In this document: in pieces, positions 27,762 through 62,228 of the stretch
How the letters are laid out: every line of letters starts with the position of its first letter
Position numbering within the stretch: position 1 is the first letter of the stretch
NCBI GenBank assembly: GCA_964199315.1
Contig: OZ116702.1
Location: forward strand, 32,674,001-32,738,000
Length of the DNA stretch: 64,000 nt
From: Orbicella franksi
Lineage: Eukaryota
Direction of reading: 5' to 3'
Notes under the pieces: model-generated
What the model saw: the letters and a program-made list of their open reading frames with translations, nothing else
What the model was told of the DNA's origin: nothing
The model's database searches: none
Translations under genes and position numbers: made by a program

Positions 27762-30714
27762 CTTTGTTGTTGTTCGACGTTGTGGTCGGGAATTTTTTGA
27801 ATGAACAAAAGATTATGTAACCTCGCTTTGATTTCTGGGTAAGTAATTAATGAATGTCACGCAATATTGCTCGACACACGATCCTCTGAAACAGAACGAA
27901 AGTCACGATGGACGACTTGATAAAGATAATCATGTGATATCCTTCAATTTCCATCTGATGGATAGTGAAAATCCATAAATTGCATTTGAGAAGCCATCTT
28001 TGAGAGAACGATTCCCAAAAGCTTACGAGGGCGGTGGCTTTTCACCCACACAAATTCTCCGCCGTGAAAAGAATGACAGTCTTTGTACGACTTTGTACGA
28101 TTCTAATTTATACGGTCGGTTTATTTAAAGTAAAAAGGCGTTGCCTATTGTCTAGAAAACCGGTTAGTCGACTAACCGCAAGGACCTAAAAATATGGGTC
28201 ACTTGGAAAATAGAAGACGAAAATATTCGATTCTGTGTTTTCTTGGGCAATCATCGATCATCACTGCTAAAATAATTATTCAAGTGTTCCCAGTCACTTG
28301 TTTCCAAATTTCGCCGCTTTTTCAGCGAAATCAAAATTCAAATTTACGGCATATTTACGAATTTACAAATATCTCCAGGACACGAAATATTCTGTCTCCC
28401 CACAATAACCCGTTTCTTTTACATGGAAATATTTTTCACTTAAACGATATTTTACGTGTCCGGGTCGAACGTAGCAATAATATTAAAGCAAGTGGGAGAT
28501 TTGATTTACACGAAACATTTTACGTGGTAGACTTGTCGTAAGCTTGCCGCATTCGACAAGGTTGGACCGTCTATTAAAATCATCACGTTTTTTCGCACCT
28601 GAGGCGCATTAAGCTGCCACGCTCATCGACTACTGGCCTGTTTTGCACTGTGCCTGCGATACACTACAGCAGGCCCTTCCATTATATTGTTCGGAGCTCC
28701 TTCCTCACAGTTCTTACAAAGGAAGCGCTTTGGACTCCCCTCGGGCTTTGACTCAAGAGAGTTATTTCAATCAGTAACGAGTTACTTCAATCCCAACCCA
28801 GTTTACGTTGTATCGTTATTAGGTCTTTCAGCCGGTAAGCAGGTTTTCTTTTAATTTAATTTTAATTTTCTTTAGTCCGGTGCATGGTCGTTAGTACTAC
28901 GCAACTATCTATATTGGCCTCGAAATAAAGCGTAAAAGAGTTTGTTTACACAGCTGAAAACGTTTTCCCCTACCCGATGATTTGCCATATTCTCATCCTC
29001 ATTTCAGATAAACTTCATGTTGCTGGCATTTTGCTGTTACGCTCGGTTCTTGGAAAACACCAATTGAAATTTGTCAACCAGGAATTAAAATACTGCATAT
29101 CACTCCATTGCTGATTATTTTAAGTTATTCTTTCAAGAAAACTGAAAATTAAAAAAAGCGATTTGAGCTCAATACAAATCCTTGAAACAGGTCACGTTCA
29201 TAAAATGGTTATGTAACAGTTAATTAATGGTCTCCGTATACTACCTGGGTTATCTGCTAAATTGACATTTTCAGTGCTCGTTACTTGTCATTGCAGGAAA
29301 TACCAAGCGTCTTTGAAAGTCTGATCTTCAATTTGTCAAAGGGTCCAGTTTTCTTTAAAAAAAAACAAACAAACATGGAGTAACTTCCTCCAGTAAGATA
29401 GATTAAGACCGGTCGGGTTTTGCTCCTGAAGTCCACCGCGCGATTGGAAAAGTTAAAAATTATGCAAGCCCCTCCCTATAGATGGTTTTTCCTTTGCTTC
29501 ACATTCAGTATATTCGCGTCGCTCTGGAAAAAGTCCTCAAAAGTGACTGAAGTTTCATATTCTATTTCCCTCCGCCAGAAAATATTTAATTTTAGTTCAA
29601 GAGCCAAGCGCGGGCGGAAAACGTGGAAGTCTATATTTTAATCTCTTGTAACGCAAAAGGTTTTCGATAGGTTTTAACACCCTTTCATTCCTTGATTGGA
29701 TTTAGTGATCTTATTCAAGTACATCTTCAATTTGAAGTTGAGTTAGAGGGTTATTGCATTAAAGGTAGAAATTTACGATATTTGTTCCTAACGGGGGTGT
29801 AAGGCCATGCTGTAAACATGACACATTTTTAATTAACACTATCTCAGTCAAATGGAAATTTGCGTAAAGATGATTTAAATTCCACCATACTGTGAAGAAC
29901 AATCGAGTCTCTTTCGTATTTCAAATGCATTACAAGTTTTAAATTCTCGTTTTCCTTCGCGTGCAACACTTTGACAAGTTATCGTAATTGCTTTCTCCAT
30001 TAAGTAATAAGACCATCAACATTTATCTGATAATTACTCATCCTTGTTCTCAAAGACATTTTAAAGTGCATAAGTTATTTGCGATAAGTGAATTATCAAG
30101 AAAAGACATTCAGCCTCTCGTTTAAAATGAGAGTGTTTGTAAAAAATCACTTTAACTCTCCGCACGTGAAAGGAACTGACGGTGCTGTTTATCTTTAAAC
30201 TTTCCGAAGTCTCTTGTTTAAAGGTAATCTGTTAGGTTCACGTTTTAGGACCTGCGTTTTTGATGAAACAAATTTGTCGTAAAAAAGGAATTTTCGTTAC
30301 TGAGCCCGGACCCTCGAGAAATGTCTAAAAACATTCTAAAGTGACACGACAGTGATTTTAAAATATGAAATGAATGGTGGCCGCTTCTCCTGAATTATGT
30401 GCCTGTAATTTTGCTGTTATCAGATCGCTCCGCCAAGTTTGACAGACCAATAGTTAAAGTAGTGGATTATTTAGGGTCGTGTTTGCCTTAGAAGTCAAAA
30501 CATTTGCAAACTTCAGCCCCACCTACGCCAGATAAATATACCTGAAACCGTCAGAAATGTTCTTCCCTGAGATAAACAGCGGTTGACGTTACATATACAG
30601 AAGCCTTTATAAGAGAACGGGTGTTACAGAGTTAGGAGGGGGGTGTTCTTGAGTCAGAGCCGGCCGAATCTAACGACAAGCGAAAAAAAGTTGATTTATA
30701 AATCTCGAGAAGAA

Positions 30715-36100: not shown

Positions 36101-39100
36101 TTAAATCTCGAAAAACTGCTCCACGCGTCCATAAACATCCACCCTCCAGCGGTAAGGCTGCCAGTTGTCAGTGTCATGCGCACGGACAACTCTGACTGCT
36201 TGCTCTTCGAAACCAATCTCTGCGCGAACATTCAACGGCGTTCCATCTTCACGAGTTAAGGTGAACGCATCGAGGTTTAGCACAGACGCAATCTGCGAAA
36301 TACAAAGAAATGCAAACTGGTCACAACGTGTCGTTCCCCAACGTCTGAGAACAGAAGAAGTACGAGCTATTGGTCGAAATCTGGCAGAGTAAAAACACTC
36401 AATACATCAGTTTTGTTTCTCGTAACCCAATCAGAAAAGTGCGAGCAGCTATCACACAGAATGTTTTTTTTGGAAACTTTACATCACGTTCTCAAGCGCA
36501 CGGAGGCCACGGAATTTTTTTTTAGGCGGGGAGGAGGGAGCGGGGAACGTTATTTGAGGAAGATGAGTGGTAGAGTTTTAGAGGTATACCGGACTCCTTT
36601 GCCCCAAGTGACCAATAAAAAAGGTACAAAGAGTGTAGAAGGTTGTCATACATTGCCATGATGCTCTCTTCCCAGGTTGCCGTAGGATGTACTTGGTCTT
36701 TCTCGGATGGTAAAAACCAAATTCCCTTCGCTGTCCTTTATGTGAAGCTTCGTAAGATCTGAGATTAACAAAATCGAGTTCTAATTAGCAAATATACTCT
36801 CTTCATGTATTACCTTGTATATTTTTTAATGTTAGTTATTAATTAGTAAATTAATTAATTAATTAATTAATTAAATCATTAATTAAACAAACAACAAGCA
36901 AATAGATATTAAATAAGAGACCGACATTCCTCGAAAAGTGAAAGCAGTTAAACTACACGAGAAAGAGGTTTGATGTTTATGGTGTAGAAAAAGTTCAAAT
37001 TCGCAAAATAATGTAATAATATCTTGTTAATTATTGGTAGCCAGTGGAGTTCCTTCACGGTGACAAGTCATGTGCTCCAGTAAACAGCAATGCCTTGCAG
37101 TTTTTAGGTTTGGTGAGAATTAAGCCAAGACTTTATTGACTTGTATATTGAGCAATGTTTGCCATAATTCTCTGTCATACAGTTGGAGTCTTAACAGGGC
37201 TGTGCTCTAAAAGTGCCTGAGTGCCACAGGTGACTACCTTCTGCCTTTGAGCGACTGGAAAAACTTACTTTTTTCATATAAGCTTAAGTGCTATCTGTTC
37301 CTATTTAGGGTCAAGTAATAAGTTTACCTGTTATGGAGTACAACCATTCTGGGGTAGCAAAGGCTCCTGAAAGGGGCTGGGTGCTAGACATGTCTGCATC
37401 ACCAAGTAGCTGACCTACAGTTGAACAAAGAAAACGATGTTATCATAAAGACCTACGGCTTATAGGCAGAGGGTGGCATGGGCAGGGCAAGAGGGGAGGG
37501 GAGAGAACAACCTCAATACTCATTTAGGATGACGACAGATCTCAACAATGTGAATACAAACTTTCTGAATGAGGAAGTACAAGACTGAGACTATGCAGCC
37601 CGGTTGTCTTATAAATCTTAGACTTTCGACTATTATTTTCTTTGGAGTTTCTCCTGTCAATCCAAAACTATAAATAATTTGTGTTTTCAAGTATTTCAAT
37701 GCAAGTTTGTAAATTAAAATTTATTTCATCACTCAGAGTTCATCTCCACTAAGGGAAGGTTTTTGGTTATTTTGAACAACCAGGAGAATTCCACGCACGT
37801 ACAGAAACAAGACATCAGTGAATACAAAATACTGCACCTATGAACTGGCCAACATTGAAATCTTCGCCTTTCAGAAGGTTGATGTCATTGTCATTAACAT
37901 CAGCGTTTTCCTCAATTTCGTTCAAAACTCTGTCCAAGTCCTGACCTTCAAGGCTGAGAAATAGCTCTGATAAACAAAAGAGAGCACACGGAGATGATCT
38001 CAATTATGGCCATTGATCTTTGACAGGAAGTACCATACAAGTTTAAAGATCTCACTCAATTTGCTTTCTTCAAAAGTGTTAAAAACTATGTTCTATCTCA
38101 ACAATATCAAACGTAAGTTTCCACAATTCTTCTAGCTCTTCCCTTCAGTAATCCGTCATTCTACTCCCATGTTTTTTTTAATGTTCACTCAGACGAGATG
38201 GAGGATAGCTCCATAACCTCTCTGTTCTATTAGCCTCCATGCACAAACTATATAACAATGTCACCTTTAATTGTTTTATATGAATCTTTTTTTCTTTTTT
38301 ATGCTAATATTGTAATTTCAAAATGTAAGTGGAAAATAAAGCGAAGTTGAAGTTGAAGTTGGAAATTATTAGCTGCTCTGATGTTATTATTGTATGCATT
38401 ATAAAAGTAAATTACAACATGAACATGCAACACCAGTCACTGCAATTATGCTGATGGGTAATACCCACGAGGTGCTAATCAGTATTTTAATTGAGGGTGT
38501 CCTTTCATGTTGTTGAAATCTTTACTGTGTCATGAAGGGTGATTTCCAGATTTCCATAACCCGTTTCAGACTGATCTTTGTAAAATCTGTACTCCACACC
38601 ATAGCCTGAAGCTGTATTTGACAGCATTTCGTCAACTCAAATAACTCTTCTTTACTCACACATCCAGTGGTACATTCTGTAAAATGTTAGGTAAAGAGGC
38701 ACCATCTCGGCCATTTTCTAGGTATAAAACAGCTCAAGAACTATACCCTTTGGAAGGAAATCATCCCCATTAAAGCCAGGGTCAGAGAGGGGGAGGGGGT
38801 TACTTTCAACAAGGAAAGCTATGAGCAAAAACAACCTGGTCAACTCAAAAGATCCCTCCCCAGTAAAATCACGCAAAATGTAAGAGAACAGTAAGGAGAA
38901 TTTTGATGCTTTGTTCTTACCACTTTGCAATGACTGCAGTTGCTCTTCTGCAGACAGGTCTAGGCCTTGCCATGGCCCTCCTATAAACATGGCAGCTTCA
39001 ACCCCAAGTAGATCTGGCTCCTGGATGTCCCTGCTACTGTCATCATAGCCATCACGGGCTTTGCTGTCACTGTTGTTGTCGACGTCATCATCATCATCAT

Positions 39101-42100
39101 TGTCCATCTCCTCCTCCTGATCATCATTGCAATTTCCTGCCTCACAGTCAGTTGTCAAGGCATCTGAAGACTGTTCTGACACTAGGGATTCCATATCACT
39201 GTCAGTTATCTCAGAGCTGAAGCTACCATCTTCGTCAAGCCAAATATCCTCTCGAGAGGGGAGTGGAATGTTTGAGACACATGGCACTGCAAATGTAAAG
39301 TACATTTTTGATCAATATGCTTTAGAAAGATTCTGTCATAACAAAAAAACCTCTAATAGTTATCCTACATCACGGGTGGACCTGAGGGGGGGGGGGAATT
39401 CAAGGAGTGGGCACCCCCCTCCCTAGGATGAAGCCTTCTTCTTTGTATTTGCTTTTAGAATTTGTTTACCTCACCAGTCAGTTAACGCCATTCCTTAGTG
39501 GTGCGTCCCCTCCTAAGAAAAATCCTGGATCCCCCCTGTACATGTATGCCTGAATGGGCAGAATCAGTGCAGCAGTGAATTTGGAAGAGTCTAAAATATT
39601 GTCCGCAATACTTCTGTTATTTACTCACTTTGTGTCAGTTTGACTTTCGACTAACTATACTTGAAATAAATGCTTAATGGACTTATTTACAACTTAACTT
39701 TGGCAAGTAGGGGCCTGTTTCTCGAGGGTCCAAAAAGTTTTCGCACTCGAAAAGCTGTAGCAAACTCTCAAACTTTTTGACTGTAGAGCTGTTTTATTCA
39801 TGTATTTTTAATACAAACAAAGGTTCTCTTCATACAAGAAGTGTCAGGCGTATACACCTCTCTGTCTCTAAATACCGATTAACTAAAAATGGCTTTTTGG
39901 GCCTGAAAAGATTCTGGGGCTTTCGAGAAACAGGCCCCTGGTGTTTAATCAAAAATGGCACTTAATACTGTAAGTTAATAAAACAATACAATATGATAAT
40001 ACTAACCTGTCACAAACACTGGATGCTGTAGAAGTTCTGCAGCTGTAGCTCTCTCTGATGGTTCAAGAACAAAACCTTGGTTGAAAAAATCCTCAACTTC
40101 AGGGCTGCATGGAGGAGATTGTGGAGGCCGAGATGCTGTCCCAATCTGTGAGGAGATATAGAAAGATGACGAATGATACATTAATTGAATTTCAATGACT
40201 GTCAATGTTGCAGAGAACAAGAAGACATTCCTCAAACAGACTTCAGAACTTTTTTCCCTCAAAGGCAAGGACTAATCCAATCCAATCCAAGGACTATTCG
40301 TAGACTTTAAAAAAAAAAAACAACTAGCAATATTCAAGGACTTGTTCCTTCAGTCAAATGCAAAACTTGGGTAGATTGGGGGGGGGGGGGGGGTAGAGGA
40401 CACAAAACACAGAATGTTCAGAAGCCCATTATACTTCACAGTCAGAGTTTATCATTTTTAACTGCTGTATTGTCAAAATCCTTTTGTTTTAGGCTTGCAA
40501 TGTTTTTCTTCACTTTCACTTATATCAATATTATAATTATGTTAGCATCAATGTCTTATTTTATGAGGATTACCTTGAACAACAAAGAGCCATAAGAGAA
40601 CTCCATCCAGGGAGGTTTACCCACCAACATTTGATAAAGTAAGCACATCAATTCCCAAATATCTGCACTGAATGAGTGCTGTTCACTGCGACAGACCTGG
40701 TGGGAAATATAAGATATATGTAAGTTCTGACCCTTCTTTCCAGCTTTAGTAGCATTAGACATGACTAGGAGTATTTCTACTCTTCCCTAAATGGGAAGCT
40801 AGACACCCTTTCACCCTGCGTGGGGTACAGGTTTGTAAGTATTCCTCTCTATTTCCTTCTGTCTTGGACTTCTCTCTGAAGATGCCACAAGTTAAAACCT
40901 GCTTTCCTCTCTATCCAGTCCACCATCCACAAAGTTCTTGCTTCCGTGGAGGTTTGACCAAAATGGTCATGGGTGTCAAAGAGACCTTCTCTCCCTTCAG
41001 CTTACTGAGTTTTAAGACTTCAGTGTATAATTTCTGAAATCATTCTCCTCCACTGAATGGGTGATTCACCCATCTAACCTCGCCATTGGCCCATTAGCTG
41101 GGTATTTACAGGATGTACAACAGGCCTTCATGGTTACCACAGTAAATCAGAGGACCAATTCTCACCCCAAATCACCCTGCCAAGTAATCTCCACTTTAAT
41201 GGATGACCACTTACATGTACCACAACTAAGAAAAAGGGTTGGAATTTGATAGCCTGAAGGCCAAACAGGGATTTGAAAAAAGCAAGCCTCTTATCTGAAC
41301 ATGAACAGTACAACAAAAACAGTTCAATCACATTTACCTCTGGGGCCATGAAGGCTTCTGTACCTCTTGGGGAATTGTCCTGTTGATAGCCATCACACCA
41401 GATTGTTGTTCCAAAGTCTGCAAGCTTCACCTTCTCTCCTGTGGCATCTAAAAGAACATTTCCGCCTGTTCACAGATTTAAAAAAAATACTTTCAATTGC
41501 TGTTTTCCTGTGACATCCAGCAAATAAAAACAGAGCATGGTAATAGCAAACAAGATTTGGTGATTTCCAAGACATCCACATCACCGATGGAAATAAAACT
41601 TCACTGTCTCCAGACTGGAGACAAAATACATGCATGCCAACTGACCTTTAATATCACGGTGCAGCAATCTTCGAGAGTGCATAAACTCCACAGCAGAAGT
41701 AACTTTGCCCAGGATATAGACTGCATGGCCCTCATAAAGTTTTCCATACTCTTCCACAGAGCCCCCTAATGGAGAGATTATGATAGATGTACCACAAAAA
41801 TAACAGTTACTGCTTACTATCTAAGCATCAAAGAGGGTTGTACTGGGGAATATTGGCTTGAGGTAGTGGCAATATGGACCTTGATCCAAAACAGAAATGA
41901 CCAAGGGCCAATATTCCTCAGTAATACTCATGCAAACTATCAGTTTGTAAGACTACGTGGTTTATTATATGTCACTTGGGCCAAAATACACTGCTTATGC
42001 CCCTTTCCACAGAAATCTCCGCAATCTCTGTGGCCTAAAACTTGCCAAGACTCTTGGAAAGATCTTGTCCAAAATTGTGCACTGGGACTTTTGACGCATC

Positions 42101-45100
42101 ATTCACATTTCTTACATGTATACCTATTTCCAAGCAGAAAAGTGACTTAAGTATTTGATTGTCAATCGAAAAATTGCCCTCTAAATCCATTTTGTTCATA
42201 GCACCTGACGAAAAATAAAATTTGTGTACCATCAATGGCGCATTTACTTGGGACTTAAACATGCCAGTTCAATGTCTTTTGTGTGGGAATCCCACAGGGC
42301 GACAGCCTGGTACAAACAATGTTCACAGGTATGGAGAAGTTTATAAGGGAACAAGAAGATCTGTTAGATTTTATAACCGCGCTTTTAAAATTTAACTGTT
42401 TTCTTAGCACTACAGTCACAACGGAGTGCACATTCCAAACCAATCCTTGACGATTCATTGATTACTGTAGACACCACATCACTTGATCAACACAAACTGT
42501 ATTATTACACCATCAGTCGTAGCTGTTGTGAAATCTCCGATGACATAATAGTCTTAATCTGAAACTTTCTTTGGGATATGTATGGGCATGAAGATATGAA
42601 CACTATTAACAACAGCTTTCTTTCTTAAAACTCAAAATTAAATTTAATTGTTTTTTCCCTCGAGTAAAGGGTTAGCAAAGAAGTCACATGAGTCACATAA
42701 TTCAAGAATTGCGTTATCCACGGCTATCTTTAGCACGGTGGTTACTTTCCTACCAATGACGTAATCCTTGCATGTTCTGACATGTTCTTTGCTTGGCTTG
42801 CAAATATTTAATTTTCCTTCTGATCTATGAACTCACTGTGATGAAACAGCCAAAGAATTTATTTCATTTGCCTAAAACCACAAGAAATAATCGCAAAATT
42901 GCATATAAATTAATGACCGTCACTTCTGGCAAAATAAACTTGCAAAGTAAACACGATCTTATTTGTCACGTAGCGAAAGTGAAAGCTGCAACCTCAGCGC
43001 ATTCCATGGCTGACATAATACCTTCTTTACACGTATTTATTGTTCCCTTTGAATCCAACACTTCGATAAAACCAAAAGAAAATATATTTTACCCACAGCA
43101 AAGACAAAAATATCCGCAAAATTGTCCGTACTTTAATGTTTCATCAGCTTTTGGCGAATAAACATCACACATTGTGTGACTCACAATTTGGCCGAGAGGG
43201 AGTTTGGGTCTGGTCACCGACAAAAAAAAAATAATAATAATAATAAACCAAGGGTGGAACATGAACCGTGCTCAGCCCATGGCTGCGTGGTTTAAAATGC
43301 ATTTTTCTAATGACTTCCCCTATTGCTAGTAAATTACTTATTAAACAAAGCTATGCCATCATCATCATCATTTATTTGCCACATATAGTAATAATACTGA
43401 AAAAGCGGCGAGGAGACCCCCAAAAGAAGCCACCTGGCTTATAATGGAGGCCACCTCAGAAGTTCATATGTGAAGTTAAAATAACAGTCTCAATGAAAGT
43501 ACTTTAATAAGGCTATACAATTTTTTTGTATGACCGTAGCTTTCACAGTGTAAATGTAGCCTGAAATAAGGACCCAACTATTTTAAAAAACTACCTTCCA
43601 TATATTCCATAAAGATAACCACAGCATCTTCGTGTTTCACAGCACCATATAGCTCCAGTATGTTAGGATGCTGTCCGGAGATGCTGCCCCATGTGTCTAT
43701 TTCCATCTGCTGAAATTGCCTCAAAGGAATCTAAAAATAAATGTTAAGAAAGATCCAAGTTTCACTAACAAATCAATGGGAACAATAAATGGTTGTTATT
43801 ATCTTGGCATATGGATGAAATACAGTGGAATACCAATTTTTCAAGCCTTCAAGGGAAACGAAAATTGGTTAGAAAAATCAGATAGTTCAAGAAATCGGGG
43901 GTAAAATTATAGTGTTTTACTGAGGAGAGGGAAACGACTTTTGCTTTGACTTTTCAGTAGGTTGGAAAAAATGAGGGATTGAGATATCAGGATTCCACTG
44001 TAATTAACATTTGAAAGGAATTTATTTTAACAGCAAAAAATTAATAGACGTCACTGTTAGTGACAATCTTACCTTCTTAATAGCAAACAAAAATCCAGTT
44101 TTTGCATCTTCACAAAAATAACAGCGCCCACAAGAGCCTCCTCCGATGTATTTCACTCGCCTCCAATGAAAATCCTCAACATAGCTTCCATCTTCACCAA
44201 CACTGAGTACATGCTGAAAAAAACAACATAAAAAGTTGAATGAAATATCAAGATATAAGTTACGAAACTGTACACTCTGGAACAACAAATTGTGCTACTA
44301 GATACACCGAAACAACAACATCAAATGATCTCTATTTTTTCAATACAAAATATTTAACATTATATATAACACAATGTTTAATTTCTGATGATCTTGTTTT
44401 AATGAGATGAGCTGTTTACTTAGGCTTTCAAGTTAACCTCCTCCTCATCGTTGGACAAGAGACATGTAGGAACAATTTACAATTTACAGTTTAGTTCAAG
44501 GGAGACCCAAAAAAAAAAATGAAAATTACTAAATAAATTCGTCCCCACCCTATGCAAAAACATATCAAGGAAACATATGAAACGTATCAAGGAAGCAGGT
44601 GTGGGAAGAGAATATTCTGAAATCTTTGAACTTTCCTCAATGTTACTGTACAAAGCAGATATATACAGTCAAAACAAATATTACAAGGAAGGCAGATGGC
44701 AGAAAGGAGCTGATATTCACATGATTACCTGATCTAGTGGCCAGATAACTTCCCCTTTTTCCTCCTGAGTAATAGGCTTCACCGTCTGCCTAATATCAGG
44801 CATACATGCTGCACTGAGGGGTGCGGTAGACTCCACTTTCCCATCACTTACATGCTGCTCAAGCCTAACTTGAGCATTAACAGTTGGCCCTCTGGCGACT
44901 TGGGCATCTGGTGATCTTTCCCTTGTCAACAGGTCAGACTGTTGCTCTGTGGCAAGCAGAACGTCTGGAGGTCTGTCAACATGGTACTGGTTCCACACCC
45001 CTGAGGACTCACCTAACGATTCTTCTATTGAAGATGTCAGACTTCCTTCACTGATCAGGGACTGATGATTCAGATTGTCGGCATCATTGGTATCGTGGAC

Positions 45101-47096
45101 CTCTGATCTTGAACTGAAATCTGCCTGACACAGTTGTGCCATAAAATGCTGATCAACATGATCGCCTTTCTCAGGACTTGAGGTGGGTGTTGCTGGTGGG
45201 CTGGGCCTGAAGAATAACTCATCAAGCTTGTAAGGCCACTTCCTGTTGTTTGGTATTCTGTTTTCCTTCAAATATTCCCTGATGGCGTCACACTTTTGAA
45301 CAACACAAGCTCCCATTGGGAGGTGGCATCTTGACGCATGGTAAAGGAGGGATTCTTTAAAGCAAATGCATTTTTTGCAACCTCCTAACACACGCATGTG
45401 GCAGTTCTGGGAGTGGCTGAGGTATTCCTGGATTTCCCGACAAGAAGCTTCACCACATTTCTTCCACTCATTCTCTGAATTTAAGAAGCGGCGGCAGCTG
45501 AAAGCTTTTTGCAAATGCTGTTCTGTTTCACGAAGATCAGTTTCTGGATGGCACTAAAAAAGAACACAGTTTGTAGTTATCAGAAGAGAATTACTTTTTA
45601 ATTAATATGTGAGTGTATATTGGTAATAATTTGACCAGATTGGTGGAATGTACACCACAAATATATGAAGGGGGACTAACTCACTTCCTCATCTTGACAC
45701 CATTTGCTTGTTGTATTGTATAAAAGAGTTGAATTGAATTGAGTTATTTCAGCTGTCCCTTGAAATTGACAATATCAACAAAGTTGGATGTCACAAGTTT
45801 ATCCATGGTAATTATCAATGATTACTTAGCTTAAGTTTGCGACACAAACACCAAGTTATTATACCTGATCACTCAAGAATAATCCACCAGCCACCTCAGA
45901 CTGCAGGTCATTAGATTGCTTTTGTAACTCACATGATGCTTCAGCAAACATTCTGGCTCCAGTCACATCAATCCTGAGGCCCTAAGATTTTATGCACAAG
46001 ACTGATTAGAAACTAAGAGAAACAAGAAATATTGCTAGTCTATTGTAACATAACAAGCTTAGATGTAACATTTTGGAACTTGAGAAACATTATGGAATTA
46101 TTACCATTGAGGCTGGAAGCTTAACCTGTGAAATGTGGCGCTTTGGTCTCCCTGGGGAGTACCCCAAGTAACTTTGTTGAAGCACATGACCCTAGACAGG
46201 GGTAGAATGAGGTGTGACTTCTGGAATGATACCATATTTTCGACAAAGACATTGGTTTCAAAATAATTACATCCAAGACAGCTACATTATTGTAGATTAT
46301 TATAGCATCAGCTTGGCCTAACCTGGGCAGCTGACCTCTTAGCGCCGTCACAAGATGGTGCACTAACCAAAATGTTTTCAGTTATTGGAGGACTCTGTTC
46401 CTGCTCTTGATGATCGTCTTGTCCACTTTCTTTAGTTTCTCCCAAGTCTTCCACTTCACACTGACCATCACCTTGACAACCACCAGTAGGCAAATTACGC
46501 TTTCTGTCATCTTCACCATCATCTCCACCGCCACTGCTGCTATGGTGGTAGCTGGCACTTCCCTGCTTTGTTTTGGAGACCTGCGCAGCTGGTTTCCCTT
46601 CATCTGTGGGTGTCTGGCCTACTTTCTGGTTTGAAGTGCTAGTTTTATCTTTGCTGTTTCCAGTGTCTGAAGGGACTTTTGTTGGAGTACTCATGGAGTC
46701 TTGATTATGTGGGCAGTCTCCACCTTGATGGCTCTCCTCTTCTGGTTGCTGTTCCTGTTCTTCACTGTTGTCCACACTACACTGGCTATCTCCCTGGCAA
46801 CCACCAGGAGGAACATTTCTCCTCGGCCCATCATCTCCATCATCCCCACCACTGCCACTACTGCTGCGGCAGTAGCTGTTACTTCCGGTTGGGCTTTTGG
46901 AGGCCTGCGCAGCAGGTTTCCCAGTATCTGGGATGGCCTGGCCTCCTTTCTGTCCTGAATCACTACTATTTCCTTGAGTGGTTTCTGCTTCTGAAGGTCC
47001 TTCTTCTCTTGACTTGACGGCTCCTGGCTGGTAGCAGAGTGAGTCAAAACATGTATGCTCCTCAGGTACTTTCATCGTTTTTCCAGTCAATGGCAC
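36101..47096 (-). CDS. MAP3K14: NF-kB-inducing kinase (NIK)-like MAP3K with an N-terminal TAZ zinc finger; 5' end unresolved
   Basis: Phase-consistent exons: 47096-46323, 45981-45865, 45553-44729, 44213-44073, 43730-43595, 41765-41646, 41465-41338, 40696-40574, 40145-40007, 39286-38921, 37966-37838, 37414-37328, 36758-36652, 36292-36101. Kinase motifs GGGSCG, AIKK, HRDIKGGN, DFG and APE are intact. NIK-like features: SYVEDFHW (cf. EYREEVHW), EDAKTGF, LYGAV, EEQLQSLQSELFL (cf. EQELQQLEIELFL), and a C-terminal domain AFTLTREDGTP...WRV (cf. AFSLVTKDGQP...WRV). Confidence 0.88.
39371..39538. mobile_element. MITE in a kinase intron
   Basis: Imperfect inverted ends cacgggtggacc / ggatcccccctg, with TACAT on both flanks. 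Confidence 0.6.
39711..39937. mobile_element. MITE family B, copy 2
   Basis: TIRs GGGCCTGTTTCTCGA / TCGAGAAACAGGCCC; the body is the reverse complement of the 23970-24195 element. Confidence 0.75.
40762..40830 (-). mobile_element. SINE fragment (same family as 30797-31080)
   Basis: catgactaggagtatttctactc is the reverse complement of the gtagaaatactc-tagtca body motif. Confidence 0.5.
43355..43460 (-). mobile_element. LINE-like 3' tail
   Basis: The minus strand reads gaggtggcctccattataagccaggtggcttctttt...aaataaatgatgatgatg (AATAAA plus short tandem tail). Confidence 0.55.
46400..46955 (-). repeat. Intragenic tandem duplication (324-nt / 108-aa period) in the NIK-like exon
   Basis: ctgcgcagc(t/a)ggtttccc at 46581 and 46905. 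Two copies of the peptide GKPAAQ.SK...SSSG..GDDG.D...RN.P.GGCQGD.QC.V. Confidence 0.85.
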
Positions 47097-47590
47097 CTGA
47101 AAGTTTACACTGTCAATGGAAACAAAATAAGTTTTTAGTCATTCAAATTTTCCAAAGAGCATATCTGACCCACCAATCTCCAACTGTACAAAATTTACAA
47201 CGGCCAACTCTAACAACAACTTGCACCATAATTTAACTTGCTGAACAATTTCTATATGTTAAATGATTGTTTAGTTTGTGGTCTATAACTTCTGGACACA
47301 AAATTACTTATCTCCTCATAAGCCTTCAGTCAATCAACTCACATTACAAACTTCTCTTCAATCATATTTCTTCTATTTAACAATTAGATGTAAATAATAA
47401 CAATTTTCTTTTCTCAGAAAATTTGTTCCGTTAAAGGAACATGTGTAAAATAAATCATTGGAGTTGTCTAACAAAGAAAATACCTACATCGTATAAATTA
47501 TTTGAGAAAGTTTAATTTCTGTAATAAAGACCAACAACAATCGCGAAGGAAAACAGTCATTTCTCAGAAACCGACCAGTCAAGCTTTAAA

Positions 47591-47601: not shown

Positions 47602-47965
47602 AAATTAAAAAAATTCCCCACCAAAAAACTTGTTCAAAAATTCCACGTTCTAATGCAAAAACCTGGGAGAAAATTACACACAAGGAAAAGAAAGTAGTGT
47701 TAAATGCTTGTGTGCTGGAATTAAAAGCGTGCATATGTGTGCACGTGTCAGCGTTAGCAAATATTTTCGCAGACATGAGTTTGTTCTTACTCTTCTTCGC
47801 CTAATTCCGTTCCTTTGTTCGACGAAATCCCTGTTGCACCAGCGGTCAAAAAGGATGGAACTGCTGAAAAAGGCAAGAAGGAAAAATACGGAGGTGAAAT
47901 TACGTGAAACAGGAAACAATTTAACTTAAGCTTAACTTCCATTGTTATTTTGAAACGTGCGAAAT

Positions 47966-48580
47966 TCAATTACAGTGTAGTATTTTTAATTGCATACACC
48001 TACCATATCCCTGGAAAAAGCCAATGTCTTTCCTCTTTAAAGCAACCGCTATGTTCAGATTTTCGCCTCCAAATTTCGCTACCAAAGGTATAATGTCCTG
48101 AATTCCAAGCGACGAGATCTTGTACTTGTCTTGCAAATCGAAAGGATGATTTTTCAATGGCGGAGTGTGTGCTGTGTTTTCGACGGTCTTAGCCGACTCG
48201 CTTTCAAATGCAAAGTCACGATCATCGATTTCGATAAAAAGATTAGTATTTTTCAGTTCGCTTTTGCCACTGCTAAAAATATAAGGGTTGCCAACGTCAT
48301 CGTCACCATCGTGCACCTCAGATGAGAGCGAAGAGTTTCTCCAGCTAGACACAATACTTCCTGTTTGCGTGGTAAGAAGAACCAAGAACTGAATTGCAGC
48401 GTAGAAGGCTTCAACGAACAAACCCAACAGTAACAAGGGATTGTGATTGATCAAGAAGGATACATTAAGGATGAAACTGCTAATAGTTTGCTCTGTTATG
48501 GACCAACGACCCCTTGGGATGGAAGCCATATTGACAATAAAGCAAAGCTGGCTTTTGCCTGCTCTTATTCCAACTGTCAT
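47966..48580 (-). CDS. Putative first coding exon of the NIK-like gene, or an upstream ORF (hydrophobic stretch, then acidic region)
   Basis: 204-codon ORF with ATGs at 48580 and 48529, the segment LLLLGLFVEAFYAAIQFLVLL, donor sites after 48004 and 48000, and a 73-nt exon at 47863-47791 downstream. No family recognised. Confidence 0.45.
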   Translation of the reverse strand: MTVGIRAGKSQLCFIVNMASIPRGRWSITEQTISSFILNVSFLINHNPLLLLGLFVEAFYAAIQFLVLLTTQTGSIVSSWRNSSLSSEVHDGDDDVGNPYIFSSGKSELKNTNLFIEIDDRDFAFESESAKTVENTAHTPPLKNHPFDLQDKYKISSLGIQDIIPLVAKFGGENLNIAVALKRKDIGFFQGYGRCMQLKILHCN

Positions 48581-48618: not shown

Positions 48619-50012
48619 AGGATCGAAGGATCTCGTAAAATGTTAACCTTACCGTTCTCACGTGACGTCATCACATTCTTTAATCCAAAACTAAAGAGCC
48701 GCCAAAGTTTTTATCCTTATCAAGCATAAGAGGTACTAATTTTATATTTTTTTTTACAACTTTCCAACTCAATAGCGTCCTTCGTCTGGAAACCAGCGCA
48801 TTTTGAATTTCAGTTACGGCGGTGCGTGACGTAAAGGTCGAAAAATATGTATTTACAGGATTTATCTCGCGATTTTTAGCCATTTAAGACGTTAAAGTAT
48901 TTGGAAAAGTGCTTATTTAAATATTTGTTTGTTCAGTGCAGTTAATCAGTGGCCTAGATAGCCAAAGTATATAAGTTCCAGCTGTTAACACTATTTTCCA
49001 GTACTACAGAGGAACACCAACATCGCGACTCCATACTAGGCTTTGTAAATTTGGGCGGAACGTTTCGACGAATATCTCAACTTTAGGACAACGCACACAC
49101 CTTAAACTTAGAGAACTGTCTTCTTTATTTATCTTCTGTGATATCATAATTTTTTGACTTTATCCACGGAATGGTTTTTTGATTTCATTTTTTATTACGC
49201 GACAGTGAAAACGCTTTACATTATACAGCTTCAAACGAAGAAAAAACACCAGACAGGACTCGACCGACATTTCGTCGCAAATTATCTTGAACCATTTAAA
49301 ATGCGTTATTTTTTAAAATTAATATTATTCGAGCGATCTGATTTTATAGCTACACAGCACTGAAACAGAGCCTGGCTGGCCTGTGGTGACATGCTTTGCA
49401 GCATTCCCAAAGTGAAGGGTCTTTTCATACTTGTTCTTTCTTATTCTTAATGTCATTGCTAATATAACAGAAATCCTCTTGATTTCAGGGGAATTGCTTG
49501 TAATTTTCGTGCACGTTACGAGTGAAATTCGCGAGGGACGCAAGAGAACTAATTTCTAAGATTTGGCGCAAAAATTTGGGCAGTTTTTTCACGGTCCTGT
49601 CTGAGTAAATGTTCAAGCAGTTCAACGAAACATTTCGAATACGAGTTACGCTGAGCGGAAGAAAGGCTGCCTATATCAGTTTTAAAACAAAACGCTAAAA
49701 CTGTTTGCTTTATTGGAGTCTTGGTTTAGAACACAACATGAGATGATGTTAGTGATAACCTTAGCCTTTTGACGTCTTTTTCAAGAGCATGTGTGACTGT
49801 AGAGAGCTCTGTATGCTTGCAACAAAGTATTAGAGATTTTTTCTCTCTATTTGAAATGCCTTCACAGAAAACTAAAATCAGATTGGGCTCCTTTTGGTCC
49901 AGTACAATTCCATGCGAAATTCCAGAGTTATCGAAAATGGCAGTTGTTTCTACAGCCTTTCTTTACACTTTCCCACCGCACCTCGTCTGATAACAAGCCC
50001 AAAATTCTCAAT

Positions 50013-56105: not shown

Positions 56106-56483
56106 TTATTTAGCACGGATATTCCAATATTCATCAGAGTCATTTTCCACCTCTTCAGGCATGTGCAGTAAGGTAATGATGACGTCATCATCTCTTTTCT
56201 GGAACAACATTTTGCCTTCAAAGTGAACCAAGTTCTGTTTCCGAGCCCGCAGTAACATTCCTACTACTTTATTCGATATTCTGGTGTATCTTTCAAACAA
56301 GCGACCAAAAGTGACGCAGACAGTTCCATCTGGTTGCTCACGACCCATCTGTAAAATAACTCTGCATAAATCTCTCACTTCCTGACTGATGTGGGCACCG
56401 GCGAATCGTCCACGAGCTTCTGTTTTCGACCCTGCTAAAGGGCGTCCATATTCTCGGCTATGCCGGCTTGGAGGAGCTGCCAT
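56106..56483 (-). CDS. ABRA: Actin-binding Rho-activating protein (STARS)-like, Costars domain, 125 aa
   Basis: YGRPLAGSKTE.RG, VTFGRLFERYTRISNKVVGMLLRARK..LVHFEG.ML.Q.RDDDV.ITLL matches the ABRA C-terminus. The YGRP block distinguishes it from ABRACL. Confidence 0.9.
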   Translation of the reverse strand: MAAPPSRHSREYGRPLAGSKTEARGRFAGAHISQEVRDLCRVILQMGREQPDGTVCVTFGRLFERYTRISNKVVGMLLRARKQNLVHFEGKMLFQKRDDDVIITLLHMPEEVENDSDEYWNIRAK

Positions 56484-57094
56484 TTTCCTGACGAGTTAAA
56501 TCACACTTTACTTTCACAAACTTCGACATGCAAAGTTTGGAAAATTTGCAAGGCAATACGCTCAAGGGTGAAGGCCATTTCATACTGTCAGTTGATTACC
56601 CAGACGTTTCCTTAATTCATCCTTTTAGTTTCAAGGGAACACATCAAGGAAAATAAGATAAATACGTTACAAAAACAGATCTCCTTGAATTGCTGTTTAT
56701 TACTTCAGCAGATCGAAGTCTGTTCCTCTGTCTGGATGTCTTAATGCTCCCATAAAGAACATAAGCTGTCCTAACTTACTTACGATCTATTTACCTTTCC
56801 AATGAATGATCGAGTCACTTCAGGTGAAGCTCTGTCGTTCCTGAAGTTTTGAACAGAACGACGAACAGAGGAGAACTACACAATCGTCCGCCATCTTTGT
56901 TTGTTGTAACTGCCTCGTTCCCAATCCTCTGTGCGTGCAATCAGCGGTCCCGTCTTGGAGGAGAGTCCCTGCGAACAGAGCGCCTTTTTCGATCTCCCTA
57001 AGAAGGGAATCCTCTTACCGATTTTCCTAGAAAGATCAACGGAGACTCTGTTCGCAGGGTAAGGTCTATTTGGTGGCCTATTTCATGGCAGCGG

Positions 57095-57809: not shown

Positions 57810-59756
57810 TTACTTATTTTCTTCACTTTGAGCCAGTGAAGCCTTCAGAAAATCTCTAGGAATGCTGACCACCGTGCGCTGAAGGTGTACTGTAGCTCGA
57901 GGCATGTCGTTTTCCATTCCCCACTCGTTCGATTCCGCTGAGTAACTCTCTACACTTTTGAAACTCTCTCCATTGCAGCTTCTTCCGAACACGTAAATCC
58001 TTCCACTAACAGTGGCTACACCCGCAGCGAATCTCGGGATATGCATACTGGCAATTTGAGTCCAGACTCTTGCGCGCGTGTCATACATTTCACAGGAACT
58101 CAATGCGTTGTGTCCGAGAATATCTGTGCTTCCACCGAGCACGAAAAGTTTATTTTGGATGGCGACGCAGCAAGCGAAAGCTCTGGCGGTATTGAGAGAA
58201 ACTATCGCATCCCAGCGATTCTATATACTATATATATCTTCTTGTTCTTTTTTTAAAGTACAATTTTATGAATAGCTGTATTTTATATGTAAATGCTGAT
58301 CGCCAGTTAATACCAGTGATCCAGTGATCACTGTTTGGCGTTTCAGGTTAAATAAAGTCTTTTACTTTTTATTCTCCTTCGGGTCGTACATTTCGGCGGT
58401 GTTAAGAAATTCGCCGTTTTCTTGTAGTCCACCAAACGCAAACACATGGTCTTTTTCTGCGACCGCACAGAGCGCGCATCGACTGGAACCAAGTGGAGCG
58501 ATCATCTCCAAAGTGTCCGTTTCAGGAAAATAATTCTGAACATCTTTTAATGCTTTATTGTCACTTCCACCGACAACATAAAGACATCCAGAGTGAACTG
58601 CTACTACTGGGAATGCCGCTCGCTTCTTTAAACTCGCAACAGACCACCATTTGTTTGTTTTCACGTCTAGTCTCTCAACAGCAGACGTGGCGCGGTCGCT
58701 GAAAACCTGCTTAGTTTCGTCATAAAATCTCCCACGATATAAACAAAGTCGTTACACTCGGTTATTCCATGACCCCAACGTTTGCAGAGTAGGGAATCTT
58801 CTGCTTCTGTCAAAACAGGTGCCAACTGATACCAGATACGTTCGAGCGTGTTGTAGCAGAGAGTCGAAGACGTGGAACCCTCCTGATAAATCCCTCCGCA
58901 GTTTATGACTAATTGCACGTCCCATTGAAGGCATTTTCTGGGCGTAATGGGTGGAGTCGCTTCCAAACTGTCCGGGGACATTAGAGAAAGGACTTTCATA
59001 GCATTCAGTAGAATATCAATGCATGATCTATTGGCTTTAACAAGGTCTTCTCCAACAATTGTATGGAGGTAGTGGTTAGACACGGAAGTCAATCGAATGT
59101 GTTGAAAAAGCCGAGAAAAGTGAATGCTTCGAGTTTTAGCGTCGTGTTTGACCCAGTTAAGTGTTTGCCTCGTTAACATCTTCCTCTCGGTCTATAACGA
59201 TGCCATCGTCTGAAATAAACTCTTCTATTTGCCCAGAGGTGAGTCTCAGAAAAGCTTCTGTTTTGGACACTTGCCTAAAGTTTTCGTTGATGAAGGCCTT
59301 CGAAACTGTTCTCAGATTTAAACAACGGTTTTTATCTGCAAATTGAAAAGTTCTCACACTGTTTTCTAGATCAAGTTCGTTTTGGAAAAACTCGCAGCCT
59401 AAATCCTTGAGTCTAACGAGGTCCAAAATAATGGCAGCTCTGATTGAGCCTTGGACATTTGATGACGTTAACTCCACGAATCCTGTGTACAAATACTGCA
59501 ATAATTCTTCTGTAACGTTCAGCGAGACTTCAGGAAGCACAGCAGAAACTTTCTATTTCTTTTTCTTGTGGCCTTGCTGTGCCAAGAGCTTTCAAAAGTA
59601 TGAGCTGTTAGCGGCGAGAATGTTACGGTGGGCGTAAAATTTCTGTCCTTCGACTAGCAGCGTCGCGTGACAGTAGATTTGGTCTTTCCGAAAATTATTT
59701 AAGGCTTTAGCCAAGTTTCCTGAGTAAGATGAGGATTCCTTTTCTTCCCGTGCCAT
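57810..59756 (-). pseudogene. Kelch-like (BTB-BACK-Kelch) pseudogene
   Basis: ATG at 59756. BTB domain (FYAHRNILAANSSYF) with in-frame stops at 59594-59592 (TGA) and 59555-59553 (TAG). Frameshifts near 59165 and 58670, Kelch repeats (LYVVGG, VFAFGG, LFVLGG) and an insertion at 58223-58370. Confidence 0.85.
58218..58375 (+). mobile_element. 5'-truncated retroelement 3' end inserted in the Kelch gene
   Basis: 148-bp insert ending ...cgtttcaggttaaataaagtcttttacttttt, flanked by a 5-bp direct repeat ATTCT (58218-58222 and 58371-58375). Removing it restores YDPKE-NRWDAIVSL. Confidence 0.7.
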
Positions 59757-62228
59757 TTTGAGACAACACTTTTCAAGGTAAAAATATTTCAGATCTCGAT
59801 GACCTAGCGGGCTGTAATCACCTAACGATATCTATTCAGGTACAGCGCAACACAAACAAATAACTTCACATTATGTTTCGACAAAAACGTAATTACTCTT
59901 GCGTATTAAAAAAATGTTTTACAAAGTTATTTGTAATTTGAATTGTTTTCAGATTTTGTCTCTGTGAAAAAGAGTTTAATAGAAGTACAATTGTCGAACA
60001 GTTAACTGGCTATTTCATTTTTCAAATATTCTGCATTCGCGAAAAAAGGTTTAATTAGCTGTCATAATTCTTTCTCAAGTAGACACTTTAACAATTTAAT
60101 CCTAAAAGTCACAGTCGCCATAATCCTCAGGGGTTTCATTCAACAAGGAAATAAATACCTAGTGTCTCTCTTTTTCCAAGTTATTTATTTATCCGTAAAA
60201 GTGGATTAAGGCGAAAAGTGGGGAGCTTTTGTTCGGAAACGTAATCGATTTTTGTGTTGACGCAAAGCAACAAATAGCTGAAGCGTGAAGTTTGAAACGT
60301 GACTTGGAAGTAATCTTCTGGGCAAAGACCAAAACGCGTATGCAATTAACAGCTTACAATGCTTAAAGTTGGTTCACGCAGGTCAATCTTTAAACCCTGA
60401 AAAAAAGAATATTACATTGACAAAGGGACTTATATGTTGCACATAAGCAGCAAAGTGTTTTCATGGCTTCGGTCATCACCACTCCCTTGTCAAGACTTTC
60501 GTTCTACTGAAACTCTCAAGCCGCTGAAGGCGGCACGAAATTTCTCATTTAATTTAGCTTCCTTGGCTCGTTATCCAAAACTTAGCAGTATATTAAGGAA
60601 TAAACGTTGCGAATCACTTAAAGCATTCTAGTTGAGTCTGAGCAATTTTTTTTTGTTTATTAAAAAATACAGGTCCGCAATGCATACATTAGCTCTATTT
60701 TCGCTAAATTGTGCCGTCGCCAATAAATAAAAAATTGCATCAGCCAACACAATGACTAACACAACTGCGGAGGAATTTTAAATTTAGTTTAGGCATATTC
60801 ACTTATAGCTGATATCTTTTATCTTTCGAGGACATTCCGTTATTCTAGCCTGGAATATAGTCTCGTGACGCCATAGAATCTTGGAGTATTCAAGGCACAC
60901 GACATACCTGATTCACACTTGGAGTATTTAAGTTTATATGAGCATGGACAAGTGATGTATTCAAGTCGAATACGGACTCAAGAATCCAAGAGTATTTCGG
61001 TAAAGCGCACGCAATATACGTGATGTCCTCGTGGAAAATTCAAGAGTATTCAAGGATGCACACTTGACGTATTCGAGTTGAATTGCGTAGGATTCTAATA
61101 GAGTATTGGAGATGTGCCCGCCCGCTTGGCCAATTCGTATTTGGCCCAGTTCGGACTTGAACATTTGGCTTTTTGCGCAAGCTGAATTTCTCTCATCCTC
61201 AGCTGTAACACGAACTACGCGGACCACAGACGCCTATCTCGATTTTTCCTCTTTTCACTACAAACATCAATCGCTTCTCCAAACAACCATAAGGTATATA
61301 AGCATTAACACCGTAAAGGAATTGAACATCATTGGAATGCGCAAGTCAACAGGTTGCGTATCACGGTCCCTATTGGAAGTTAAGATTATTCTGGGCGTTT
61401 CTTTAGCTCCTTAATATCCACATCATGAACAACGCAAAAATTCCTTAGTTTGTTTGTAACCTACGGTATGCAACAACTGCGCAGGCGTACTGGTAATCTG
61501 TTCAAGTAAATGATGGAGTCTTGCTGAAGACTTCAGCTATTCAGTTCTTTTTTCAGACGCAGACATTGTTTCCCTGCAGGAATGATTTGCCATGCAGTAA
61601 ATGCTCAGTTCAAGCCGTATGTCTGCTATTCAGAAAACTCGCCTGACCTAGAATGAGTGGTTCATGGCAAAAGTCCACGCATAAAATAACTTTGCGGGAC
61701 TCAGCACCATTTACAGCATTCTAATCACTCTTTGCCTTAAAAGAGTATTAACACTAAGCCATAACAGCAACACAGAAGTCTAGATGTCTCGGAAGGGCCT
61801 TCGTCTGCCAATTCCTTTGCGAAACTTTAATTGATGTAGTATTCGAGGTCTCGACTGAGTCGCAAAGAATTCTTTTAATTCTAAAAGCGGGAACTTTGTT
61901 TTATTGCGGTTTTTGGTATTACTGGAAAAGTTCAAAGTTTAGGTGCAAAGTTTGCTCCTAGATCGACAGTTTCATTTTATTAGAATTACTACGTCGTCAA
62001 TAGGCGTGGCCTGTTTTAGCGCCGTGAGAAAAAAACTGCTTCTCGCCGTTGTTTTGTAAGTTGTCTAACATGTGTGGGCCCTTACGCTTTTCATAATTTA
62101 ACCCTTTAGATTTTAGGGTCAATCCCGATTCAATTAAAGCGCTTCTTATTTTTAAATCCGAGGTTAAAATGCTACTGTGTGTTCAAGCTATTTGAAAAGC
62201 AATATTTATACATTCTTGTGCTACTTTT

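Follow-up and report, generated by a model that had tools for sequence, protein, structure and literature searches.

A TAZ2-like zinc-finger domain in an expressed MAP3K-type kinase gene of corals and sea anemones

Introduction

TAZ domains are the activation-domain docking modules of the CBP/p300 co-activators, and outside CBP/p300 they occur in the plant BTB-TAZ proteins, where the module has moved into another protein context. MAP3K-type kinases carry non-catalytic domains of their own, and in MAP3K2/3 precomputed Pfam annotation places a PB1 domain beside the kinase. To our knowledge vertebrate NIK (MAP3K14) has no TAZ domain. Here we describe a gene of the coral Orbicella franksi in which a TAZ2-like module and a MAP3K-type kinase domain are encoded in one spliced and expressed mRNA. 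The gene lies on the minus strand of a stretch of 64,000 nucleotides (assembly GCA_964199315.1, contig OZ116702.1, positions 32,674,001 to 32,738,000), which we call the window and to whose numbering all window positions below refer. An initial annotation of this DNA had proposed a CBP/p300-type TAZ zinc finger fused into a NIK-like kinase and had regarded the architecture as unusual.

In the full-text literature we found no paper that describes a TAZ domain in a kinase, or that describes this gene. Workers on sea-anemone NF-kB report that their search for a NIK-like kinase in basal animals found none (PMC5700166), and a study of the Aplysia immunome found neither NIK nor Tpl2 (PMC9334734).

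Results

The TAZ exon and the kinase exons are joined in one mRNA

The TAZ-type sequence lies in exon 5 of the gene, which is 825 nucleotides (nt) long, has phase 0 at both ends and translates as 275 codons with no stops (amino acids (aa) 502-776 of the protein). It holds the TAZ domain and an acidic linker of 180 aa. A polypyrimidine tract and AG acceptor stand before 45553 and a GT donor (GTAATC) follows 44729. The first 95 residues of the exon carry all three of the zinc-site spacings that had been reported (C-x12-C-x4-C, HSQNC-x7-C-x2-C and YHASRC-x6-C-x4-C). A genome search finds exon 5 as a single copy, with no second TAZ-kinase copy in the source genome. The features of this region are as follows, with residues of the zinc sites numbered from the start of the exon:

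44729..45553, minus strand: exon 5, aa 502-776, both ends set by RNA joints
45269..45523, minus strand: TAZ2-like zinc-finger domain, protein aa ~512-596, exon-5 residues 11-95, from Pfam, the family profile and the structure model with Foldseek
45440..45508, minus strand: degenerate zinc site 1, Lys16 at the His position followed by C20-x12-C33-x4-C38, a reading of the sequence
45368..45415, minus strand: zinc site 2, H47-x3-C51-x7-C59-x2-C62, aligned to 3t92
45290..45340, minus strand: zinc site 3, H72-x3-C76-x6-C83-x4-C88, from the sequence and the profile alignment
40007..44213, minus strand: kinase domain, aa ~795-1035, in six exons (44213-44073, 43730-43595, 41765-41646, 41465-41338, 40696-40574 and 40145-40007)

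RNA contigs from three runs of three different studies (X1, X12 and X2) were aligned on window positions 41300-47200. All three contain the two joints that border exon 5, 45865 to 45553 and 44729 to 44213, as GT-AG introns of the minus strand. The complete series of minus-strand GT-AG joints begins with a piece from 47109 to 46322 that is joined to 45980, and continues with 45865 to 45553, 44729 to 44213, 44073 to 43730, 43594 to 41764 and 41645 to 41464. A single contig of 3121 nt from a polyA library holds all of these joints in seven exons from 47109 to 41336, and its overhangs run on into 47791 upstream and into ~40694 downstream. Across the joint that closes exon 5 the reading frame stays open: ...VIWPLDQ, the last residues of the TAZ exon, leads directly into HVLSVGEDGSY...IGGGSCG, with which the kinase starts. 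The exon is in frame upstream of the kinase domain, as the initial annotation had it, and is spliced to the kinase exons.

Fourteen RNA runs contain 0.40-0.55 of the sampled words of 43500-46000, a stretch of which exons make up 0.49. Unspliced contigs are also present at low depth (6-11, against 53-266 for spliced ones); these are pre-mRNA or DNA carry-over. The raw reads of a further run from a related species (X21) placed only 7 reads and were uninformative. The observation of a TAZ-type exon joined to a kinase is confirmed by these data, and the two belong to one expressed mRNA.

The domain is closest to TAZ2 of CBP/p300

The Pfam zf-TAZ profile (PF02135) matches the exon over nearly its full length (profile positions 4-72 of 72, E=1.4e-4, 22.7 bits, 22.7-22.9 across runs), though below the Pfam gathering cut-off of 25 bits, and it is the only meaningful Pfam match of exon 5. 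Orthologues fall on both sides of this cut-off, with P0002 (36.0), P0015 (27.1) and P0005 (25.1) above it and P0017 (20.1) and P0006 (19.9) below. Searched as a single sequence against the PDB, the exon matches p300 TAZ2 weakly, with E~0.02. A family profile was built from 14 kinase-linked relatives with zero CBP sequences included, 12 of the 14 matching zf-TAZ individually. Against the PDB this profile finds p300 TAZ2 (3t92) at E=1.6e-12 and TAZ1 chains at ~2e-3, and its top 15 matches are all CBP/p300 TAZ2, so that the coral domain is nearer to TAZ2 than to TAZ1.

A structure prediction gives the same assignment. The AlphaFold2 (AF2) model of the first 130 exon-5 residues has a mean predicted local distance difference test score (pLDDT) of 86 and a predicted template-modelling score (pTM) of 0.77, and it shows the helices of the TAZ bundle. 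In a Foldseek search of the PDB with this TAZ model, ranks 1-13 are all CBP/p300 TAZ2 (probability 0.95-1.00), on which the predicted fold superposes with template-modelling (TM) scores by target of 0.38-0.71 and a root-mean-square deviation (rmsd) of 2.7-2.9 Å.

Like CBP/p300 TAZ2, the coral domain is predicted to be a four-helix bundle. The claim that its zinc-site spacing matches CBP/p300 TAZ2 stands for site 2, where H-x3-C-x7-C-x2-C with its GGC turn is identical to p300, and stands in part for site 3, which has the form H-x3-C...C-x4-C with two extra residues inserted throughout the kinase-linked family. The first loop is also longer in the kinase family, by six extra profile positions. 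In the relatives that cover them, none of the eight ligands of sites 2 and 3 varies (12/12 or 14/14 for those of site 2, 14/14 for those of site 3), and the three Cys of site 1 are kept in 10/10. The first-site His had been read as replaced by Lys, which is indeed residue Lys16 here, and a His stands at this position in 0 relatives. Where CBP/p300 TAZ2 has three complete HCCC sites, the kinase-linked domain has two, with site 1 reduced to CCC. Three other residues (His13, His52 and His77) were considered as a substitute fourth ligand for site 1 and rejected, since none is conserved in relatives.

The TAZ identity is accepted because the near full-length Pfam match, the family-profile match, the AF2 and Foldseek results and the conservation of ligands agree. 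Judged from alignment and model together, the domain is predicted to be a bundle of the TAZ2 type in which two zinc sites are canonical (HCCC) and the third is CCC. Its host differs from that of CBP/p300 TAZ2, which is an acetyltransferase where the protein here is a kinase, and family motifs (LD.LFF and PSPP.TP) follow the TAZ domain.

Two coral-type relatives, P0002 and P0004, have a tandem duplicate of the site-2/site-3 half only, together with an LD.FFF motif, and the aligned sequences indicate that the TAZ module is partly duplicated in these lineages.

The same order of domains occurs in sea anemones and other corals

An exhaustive HMMER search with the whole of exon 5 against 1.84 billion representative proteins gave 32 matches only, 17 of them with E < 1e-10; most come from coral or anemone assemblies as fragments of one exon. 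The Desmophyllum pertusum protein KAJ7391779.1 (P0006, 474 aa) covers the N-terminal region and the TAZ domain, the latter at 71% identity. The Actinia tenebrosa protein XP_031568983.1 (P0017, 1174 aa, labelled "uncharacterized, partial") has both zf-TAZ (478-548) and Pkinase (764-1010), and the kinase exons of the window are colinear with it at 46% identity over 266 aa. An Acropora-type transcript ORF (open reading frame; P0251, 602 aa) contains the end of the linker exon, the kinase, the tail and the C-terminal domain.

At least five further taxa show the order of TAZ and then kinase, on independent contigs. In locus L011 the TAZ exon is followed, on its own strand, by the full set of six kinase exons at 58-80% identity, and L009 has the TAZ exon with the first two kinase exons (57-80% for the two loci taken together). 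In L010 a more divergent TAZ exon is followed by kinase exons 4-5 kb downstream, and in the P0015 locus a Pkinase exon lies ~9 kb downstream of TAZ. The architecture that the initial annotation had thought unusual is therefore shared by sea anemones and other corals and has no description that we could find. So far it is known only from hexacorallian anthozoans plus further assemblies. We conclude that the combination of a TAZ2-like module with a MAP3K is genuine and, as a domain architecture, new.

In public annotation the gene is for the most part split. The model for Desmophyllum ends after the TAZ domain, the Acropora digitifera model XP_015766137.1 (RefSeq "MAP3K2-like") contains the C-lobe of the kinase and the tail only, and the precomputed Pfam list of the Actinia protein does not include zf-TAZ. 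Domain-architecture searches would miss the gene because of such split models and of a TAZ domain that scores under the threshold. These findings correct the public annotation, in which most models halve the gene and the TAZ domain stays under the Pfam threshold in several species.

The kinase is a MAP3K with some NIK/Tpl2-like traits

The gene encodes an anthozoan MAP3K-type serine/threonine kinase of ~1302 aa. The spliced model contains GGGSCG (aa 800), FAIKK (819), HRDIKG (904), ADFG (924) and MAPEV (948), the Pkinase profile (PF00069) matches at E=2.4e-51 in Actinia and 6.7e-53 in P0251, and the set of catalytic motifs is complete. Its best PDB and Swiss-Prot matches are MAP3Ks. The Actinia kinase scores 128.7 bits with MAP3K8 (COT/Tpl2), 122.4 with NIK and 122.3 with MAP3K2 (MEKK2) in the PDB, with STE20 kinases next, ~6 bits lower at 116.5. 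For the Acropora-type kinase MAP3K2 is the top match at 128.1, followed by MAP3K8 at 125.5 and NIK at 111.4. A Foldseek search of Swiss-Prot with the AF2 kinase model also places MAP3Ks first; mouse NIK is at rank 8 with the highest identity of these matches (34%) and an rmsd of 2.4 Å.

The designation "NIK-like" in the initial annotation is not established. The first kinase exon alone (47 aa) finds NIK first in the PDB, weakly (E=0.006 over 40 residues), and the stretch 20-40 residues before the glycine loop (Y-x4-HW) aligns with NIK only and with neither MAP3K8 nor MAP3K2; the AF2 pLDDT there is <50. NIK, MAP3K8 and the coral family have in common an ungapped run from the VAIK lysine to LYGAV and a GTE before APE (GTE..MAPEV in the activation segment of NIK and the coral kinase). 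On the other side, whole-domain scores are about equal, and the catalytic loop is HRD-I/V-K-G-A/G-N, as in the HRDIKGANIL of MAP3K2, and not the HGDVKADN of NIK. We therefore describe the protein as a MAP3K with some apparent NIK/Tpl2-like traits and regard NIK orthology as unproven.

An assignment as the MAP3K2/3 orthologue was rejected because corals have a separate MAP3K2-like gene that bears the PB1 domain (P0072 of Acropora palmata, PF00564). Protein searches with regions of Actinia P0017 and with the exon alignment return generic STE11, STE20 and Nek kinases besides the orthologues P0163 and P0251, and a search of the ESM Atlas with the kinase gave generic kinase clusters only. Elsewhere in the source genome no kinase exceeds 36% identity to that of Actinia. 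In alignments of exon fragments MAFFT put the ends of kinase exons one and two in the wrong places, and these alignments were not used for classification.

Discussion

Proposed role of the TAZ module

The reading that we prefer, and to which we give somewhat better than even credence, is that the TAZ part of exon 5 belongs to a 15-exon MAP3K-type gene in which it most likely acts as a docking or regulatory domain. The role is suggested by analogy, as MAP3Ks carry their own non-catalytic domains. The module may bind short amphipathic helical peptides as TAZ2 of CBP/p300 does. Such peptides could be part of a substrate or of a regulator that would thereby be brought to the kinase, or they could come from the protein's own acidic tail and hold the kinase closed until a signal releases it. 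The kinase might feed NF-kB, JNK/p38 or another pathway. Patches of the EDIWLDEDGSF type in this tail seem to resemble activation-domain motifs. A complex prediction of the TAZ domain (130 aa, 3 Zn) with the first 70 tail residues had a score of 0.00 and a partner pLDDT of ~41, and counts neither for nor against such binding.

Several points weigh against this picture. The Pfam score of the window domain is under the gathering cut-off, and because TAZ2 sequences of the CBP type were part of the AF2 input alignment, the agreement in fold does not count as evidence separate from that in sequence. The position of the site 1 His is occupied by K, Q, N, E, L, S or A in the relatives and never by His. 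The net charge of the domain is +3, weakly basic compared with the +13 of the CBP TAZ2 of the same genome (relatives range from 0 to +9), even if it is the sole basic segment of an otherwise acidic protein, and this low charge weakens the simple analogy with the binding of acidic activation domains. The Logan contigs from which the RNA joints were read are blind to rare isoforms, and an isoform that skips the TAZ exon, with phase 0 on both sides, may exist. Finally, exon 1, the acceptor of exon 2 and everything from the donor of exon 10 to exon 15 depend on homology and splice consensus and not on reads.

Alternative explanations

The loss of the site 1 His in every relative and the low charge would both suit an explanation in which the TAZ domain has no outside ligand, being an internal structural or autoinhibitory zinc-stabilised bundle that packs on the linker, the kinase or the tail, or else a decaying relic. 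The tail of net charge -32 that follows the kinase, with its activation-domain-like hydrophobic patches, would be suited to binding in cis, and the duplication of the site-2/site-3 half only in P0002 and P0004 points the same way. Decay is harder to reconcile with the eleven Cys/His ligands and many surface positions that are kept among relatives only 33-65% identical to the window in this region, and we consider this explanation as a whole unlikely, if a serious competitor. Another reading, which follows the initial annotation, is a cnidarian NIK orthologue whose TAZ domain would, by analogy, dock directly on acidic activation domains of transcription factors (NF-kB, p53 or STAT), with the kinase phosphorylating them or their inhibitory parts. 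NIK is one of the three kinases of solved structure that match best and has the top identity among the Swiss-Prot fold matches; only its alignment extends ~20-40 residues upstream of the glycine loop; the first kinase exon ranks it first, aligning D..Y.E..HW; and the gapless VAIK lysine-LYGAV run and the GTE before APE are common to NIK, MAP3K8 and the family. Docking of this kind also has precedents among the matches of the TAZ domain, which include solved complexes of CBP/p300 TAZ2 with peptides of p53, p63, p73, STAT1 and C/EBP epsilon. Yet NIK is never the best whole-domain match, and with the Acropora-type kinase MAP3K2 and MAP3K8 outscore it by 14-17 bits. The HRD-I/V-K-G catalytic loop is that of MAP3K2 and not the HGDVKAD of NIK, RefSeq labels the Acropora digitifera kinase half 'MAP3K2-like', and the TAZ domain is only weakly basic. 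On balance we think this reading would probably prove wrong.

A related proposal, by analogy, is that the protein would be the anthozoan counterpart of a NIK/Tpl2-type kinase of the NF-kB pathway, its TAZ domain docking directly on an acidic or amphipathic stretch of the p100-like NF-kB or of another transcription factor; we hold this to be more doubtful still. If it were true, a MAP3K would be coupled to a transcription factor without adaptor proteins. At the far end stands the explanation that there is no real fusion, the Cys/His pattern being due to chance, or the TAZ exon belonging to a neighbouring or overlapping gene or to an artefact of assembly or gene models. The public models that split the locus into the TAZ half of Desmophyllum and the kinase half of Acropora digitifera would fit it, as would the sub-threshold Pfam score. 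It is already contradicted by the spliced RNA contigs of three studies that cross both exon borders with GT-AG, by the family-profile match to TAZ2 and by the same order on the independent contigs of other taxa, and we regard it as scarcely credible.

The conserved and expressed TAZ domain in a catalytically complete MAP3K shows that corals and sea anemones have taken a part of the transcription-factor-binding machinery into a signalling kinase of the cytoplasmic type. The gene is a concrete candidate for research on cnidarian immunity and stress, and it belongs to the small number of MAP3Ks there that show NIK/Tpl2-like traits.

Gene model and protein layout

The gene model has 15 coding exons and spans ~12.4 kb of the minus strand (48529-36101), with a single ORF of 1302 aa and GT-AG borders throughout. 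It was built from the RNA joints, the Actinia, Desmophyllum and Acropora-type proteins and splice consensus. RNA joins the first four kinase exons and the contig continues into 40696, while the last two come from homology and GT-AG borders. The order of domains is N-terminal region, acidic repeats, TAZ, linker, kinase, very acidic tail and C-terminal domain. The remaining exons and protein regions are:

48004..48529, minus strand: coding part of exon 1, aa 1-175, placed by the match to the N-terminus of Desmophyllum P0006, a GTAGGT donor and the open frame
47791..47863, minus strand: exon 2 (73 nt), donor from the RNA contig that runs from 47109 into 47791, acceptor 47863 from AG and frame
46323..47109, minus strand: exon 3, aa 201-462, RNA pieces covering ~46322-47109
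45865..45981, minus strand: exon 4, aa 463-501, with RNA joints on both sides and a match to Desmophyllum P0006
38921..39286, minus strand: exon 12, placed by frame, GT-AG and the acidic tails of P0017, P0163 and P0251
36101..37966, minus strand: exons 13-15 (37966-37838, 36758-36652 and 36292-36101, then TAA), placed by homology to P0251
aa 1-175: conserved N-terminal region, hydrophobic over residues 32-50
aa 176-501: acidic region rich in Ser and Gly, with an internal repeat present twice
aa 597-776: acidic linker, in which several short motifs are conserved

Exon 1 has an alternative ATG at 48580. The hydrophobic segment LLLLGLFVEAFYAAIQFLV (window 48380-48436, aa 32-50) has a Kyte-Doolittle mean of 2.15 over 19 residues, and the Desmophyllum model also has an N-terminal hydrophobic segment. 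It may be a membrane anchor or hairpin, in an exon whose link to the gene we infer. On the minus strand at 48658-48673, ~130 bp upstream of the ATG at 48529, is the palindromic TGATGACGTCACGTGA, which contains a full cAMP response element (CRE), TGACGTCA (48663-48670), and an overlapping E-box CACGTG (48660-48665). Lying upstream of the presumed first exon, this palindrome may be a promoter element.

The translation of exon 3 is of acidic, Ser/Gly-rich low complexity and has two copies of a repeat of ~100 aa (GKPAAQ.SK ... SSSG.GGDDG.D..R.RN.P.GGCQGD.QC), and Desmophyllum and Actinia each have one motif that resembles it. The linker of exon 5 contains LP..W.Y.LD.LFF.PSPP.TP (45182-45253), WNQYHVDRPPD (44963-44995) and, at its end, I/V-LWPL, as well as TRGP and PLSA.C.P, and these motifs are kept across the relatives P0001-P0016. 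A scan for TRAF-type motifs gave short degenerate [PSAT]x[QE]E hits only, such as TQEE at aa 763 directly before the I/V-LWPL motif, and these were rejected as too weak to claim.

The tail encoded by exon 12 (aa 1039-1160) carries its net charge of -32 over 122 aa, with hydrophobic patches of the kind noted above. The C-terminal ~100 aa (exons 14-15, 36101-36758) are 57-62% identical to the C-terminus of P0251 and follow the pattern DLTK...RERP..YG.LGR..HGN...DGTPL.V.AEIG..EQA.RV.RAHDTD.WQP.RWRV. This domain has no Pfam match, and its best ESM Atlas score is 0.79.

The intron between ~43594 and ~41766 contains a dispersed repeat of ~750 bp (42350-43100), of which at least 40 copies were scored at ~92% identity on many chromosomes out of 1557 first-look candidates, and for which Rfam has no match. 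The huge apparent RNA depth at 42350-43100 (10,000-50,000) is due to this repeat.

Other TAZ genes of the source genome and further features of the window

The source genome also contains a cluster of four genes at G000:C9:2336082-2511527 (L003, L004, L005 and L007), each with a long open frame of 375-555 aa that starts with a TAZ domain and continues in Ser/Thr/Pro-rich sequence, with no kinase in any of them. Their match to the kinase-linked TAZ profile is weak (hhalign probability 41%). The cluster resembles the kinase gene in having a single TAZ module that is movable into other protein contexts, and differs from it in the absence of a kinase and in the first-site His, which three of the four frames (L003-L005) have four residues before the first Cys.

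The CBP/p300 locus itself is at G000:C9:28495552-28521670, with TAZ1 (L001) and TAZ2 (L002). A second TAZ2-like open frame of 116 aa (L006), ~9 kb away in the same locus, appears to duplicate part of the TAZ2 exon.

Three further frames on the minus strand of the window were noted by eye: a long open frame at 57813-59831 that appears BTB-Kelch-like, a 453-codon frame at 26454-27812 with a BTB-like start, and a short conserved-looking frame at 56109-56495.

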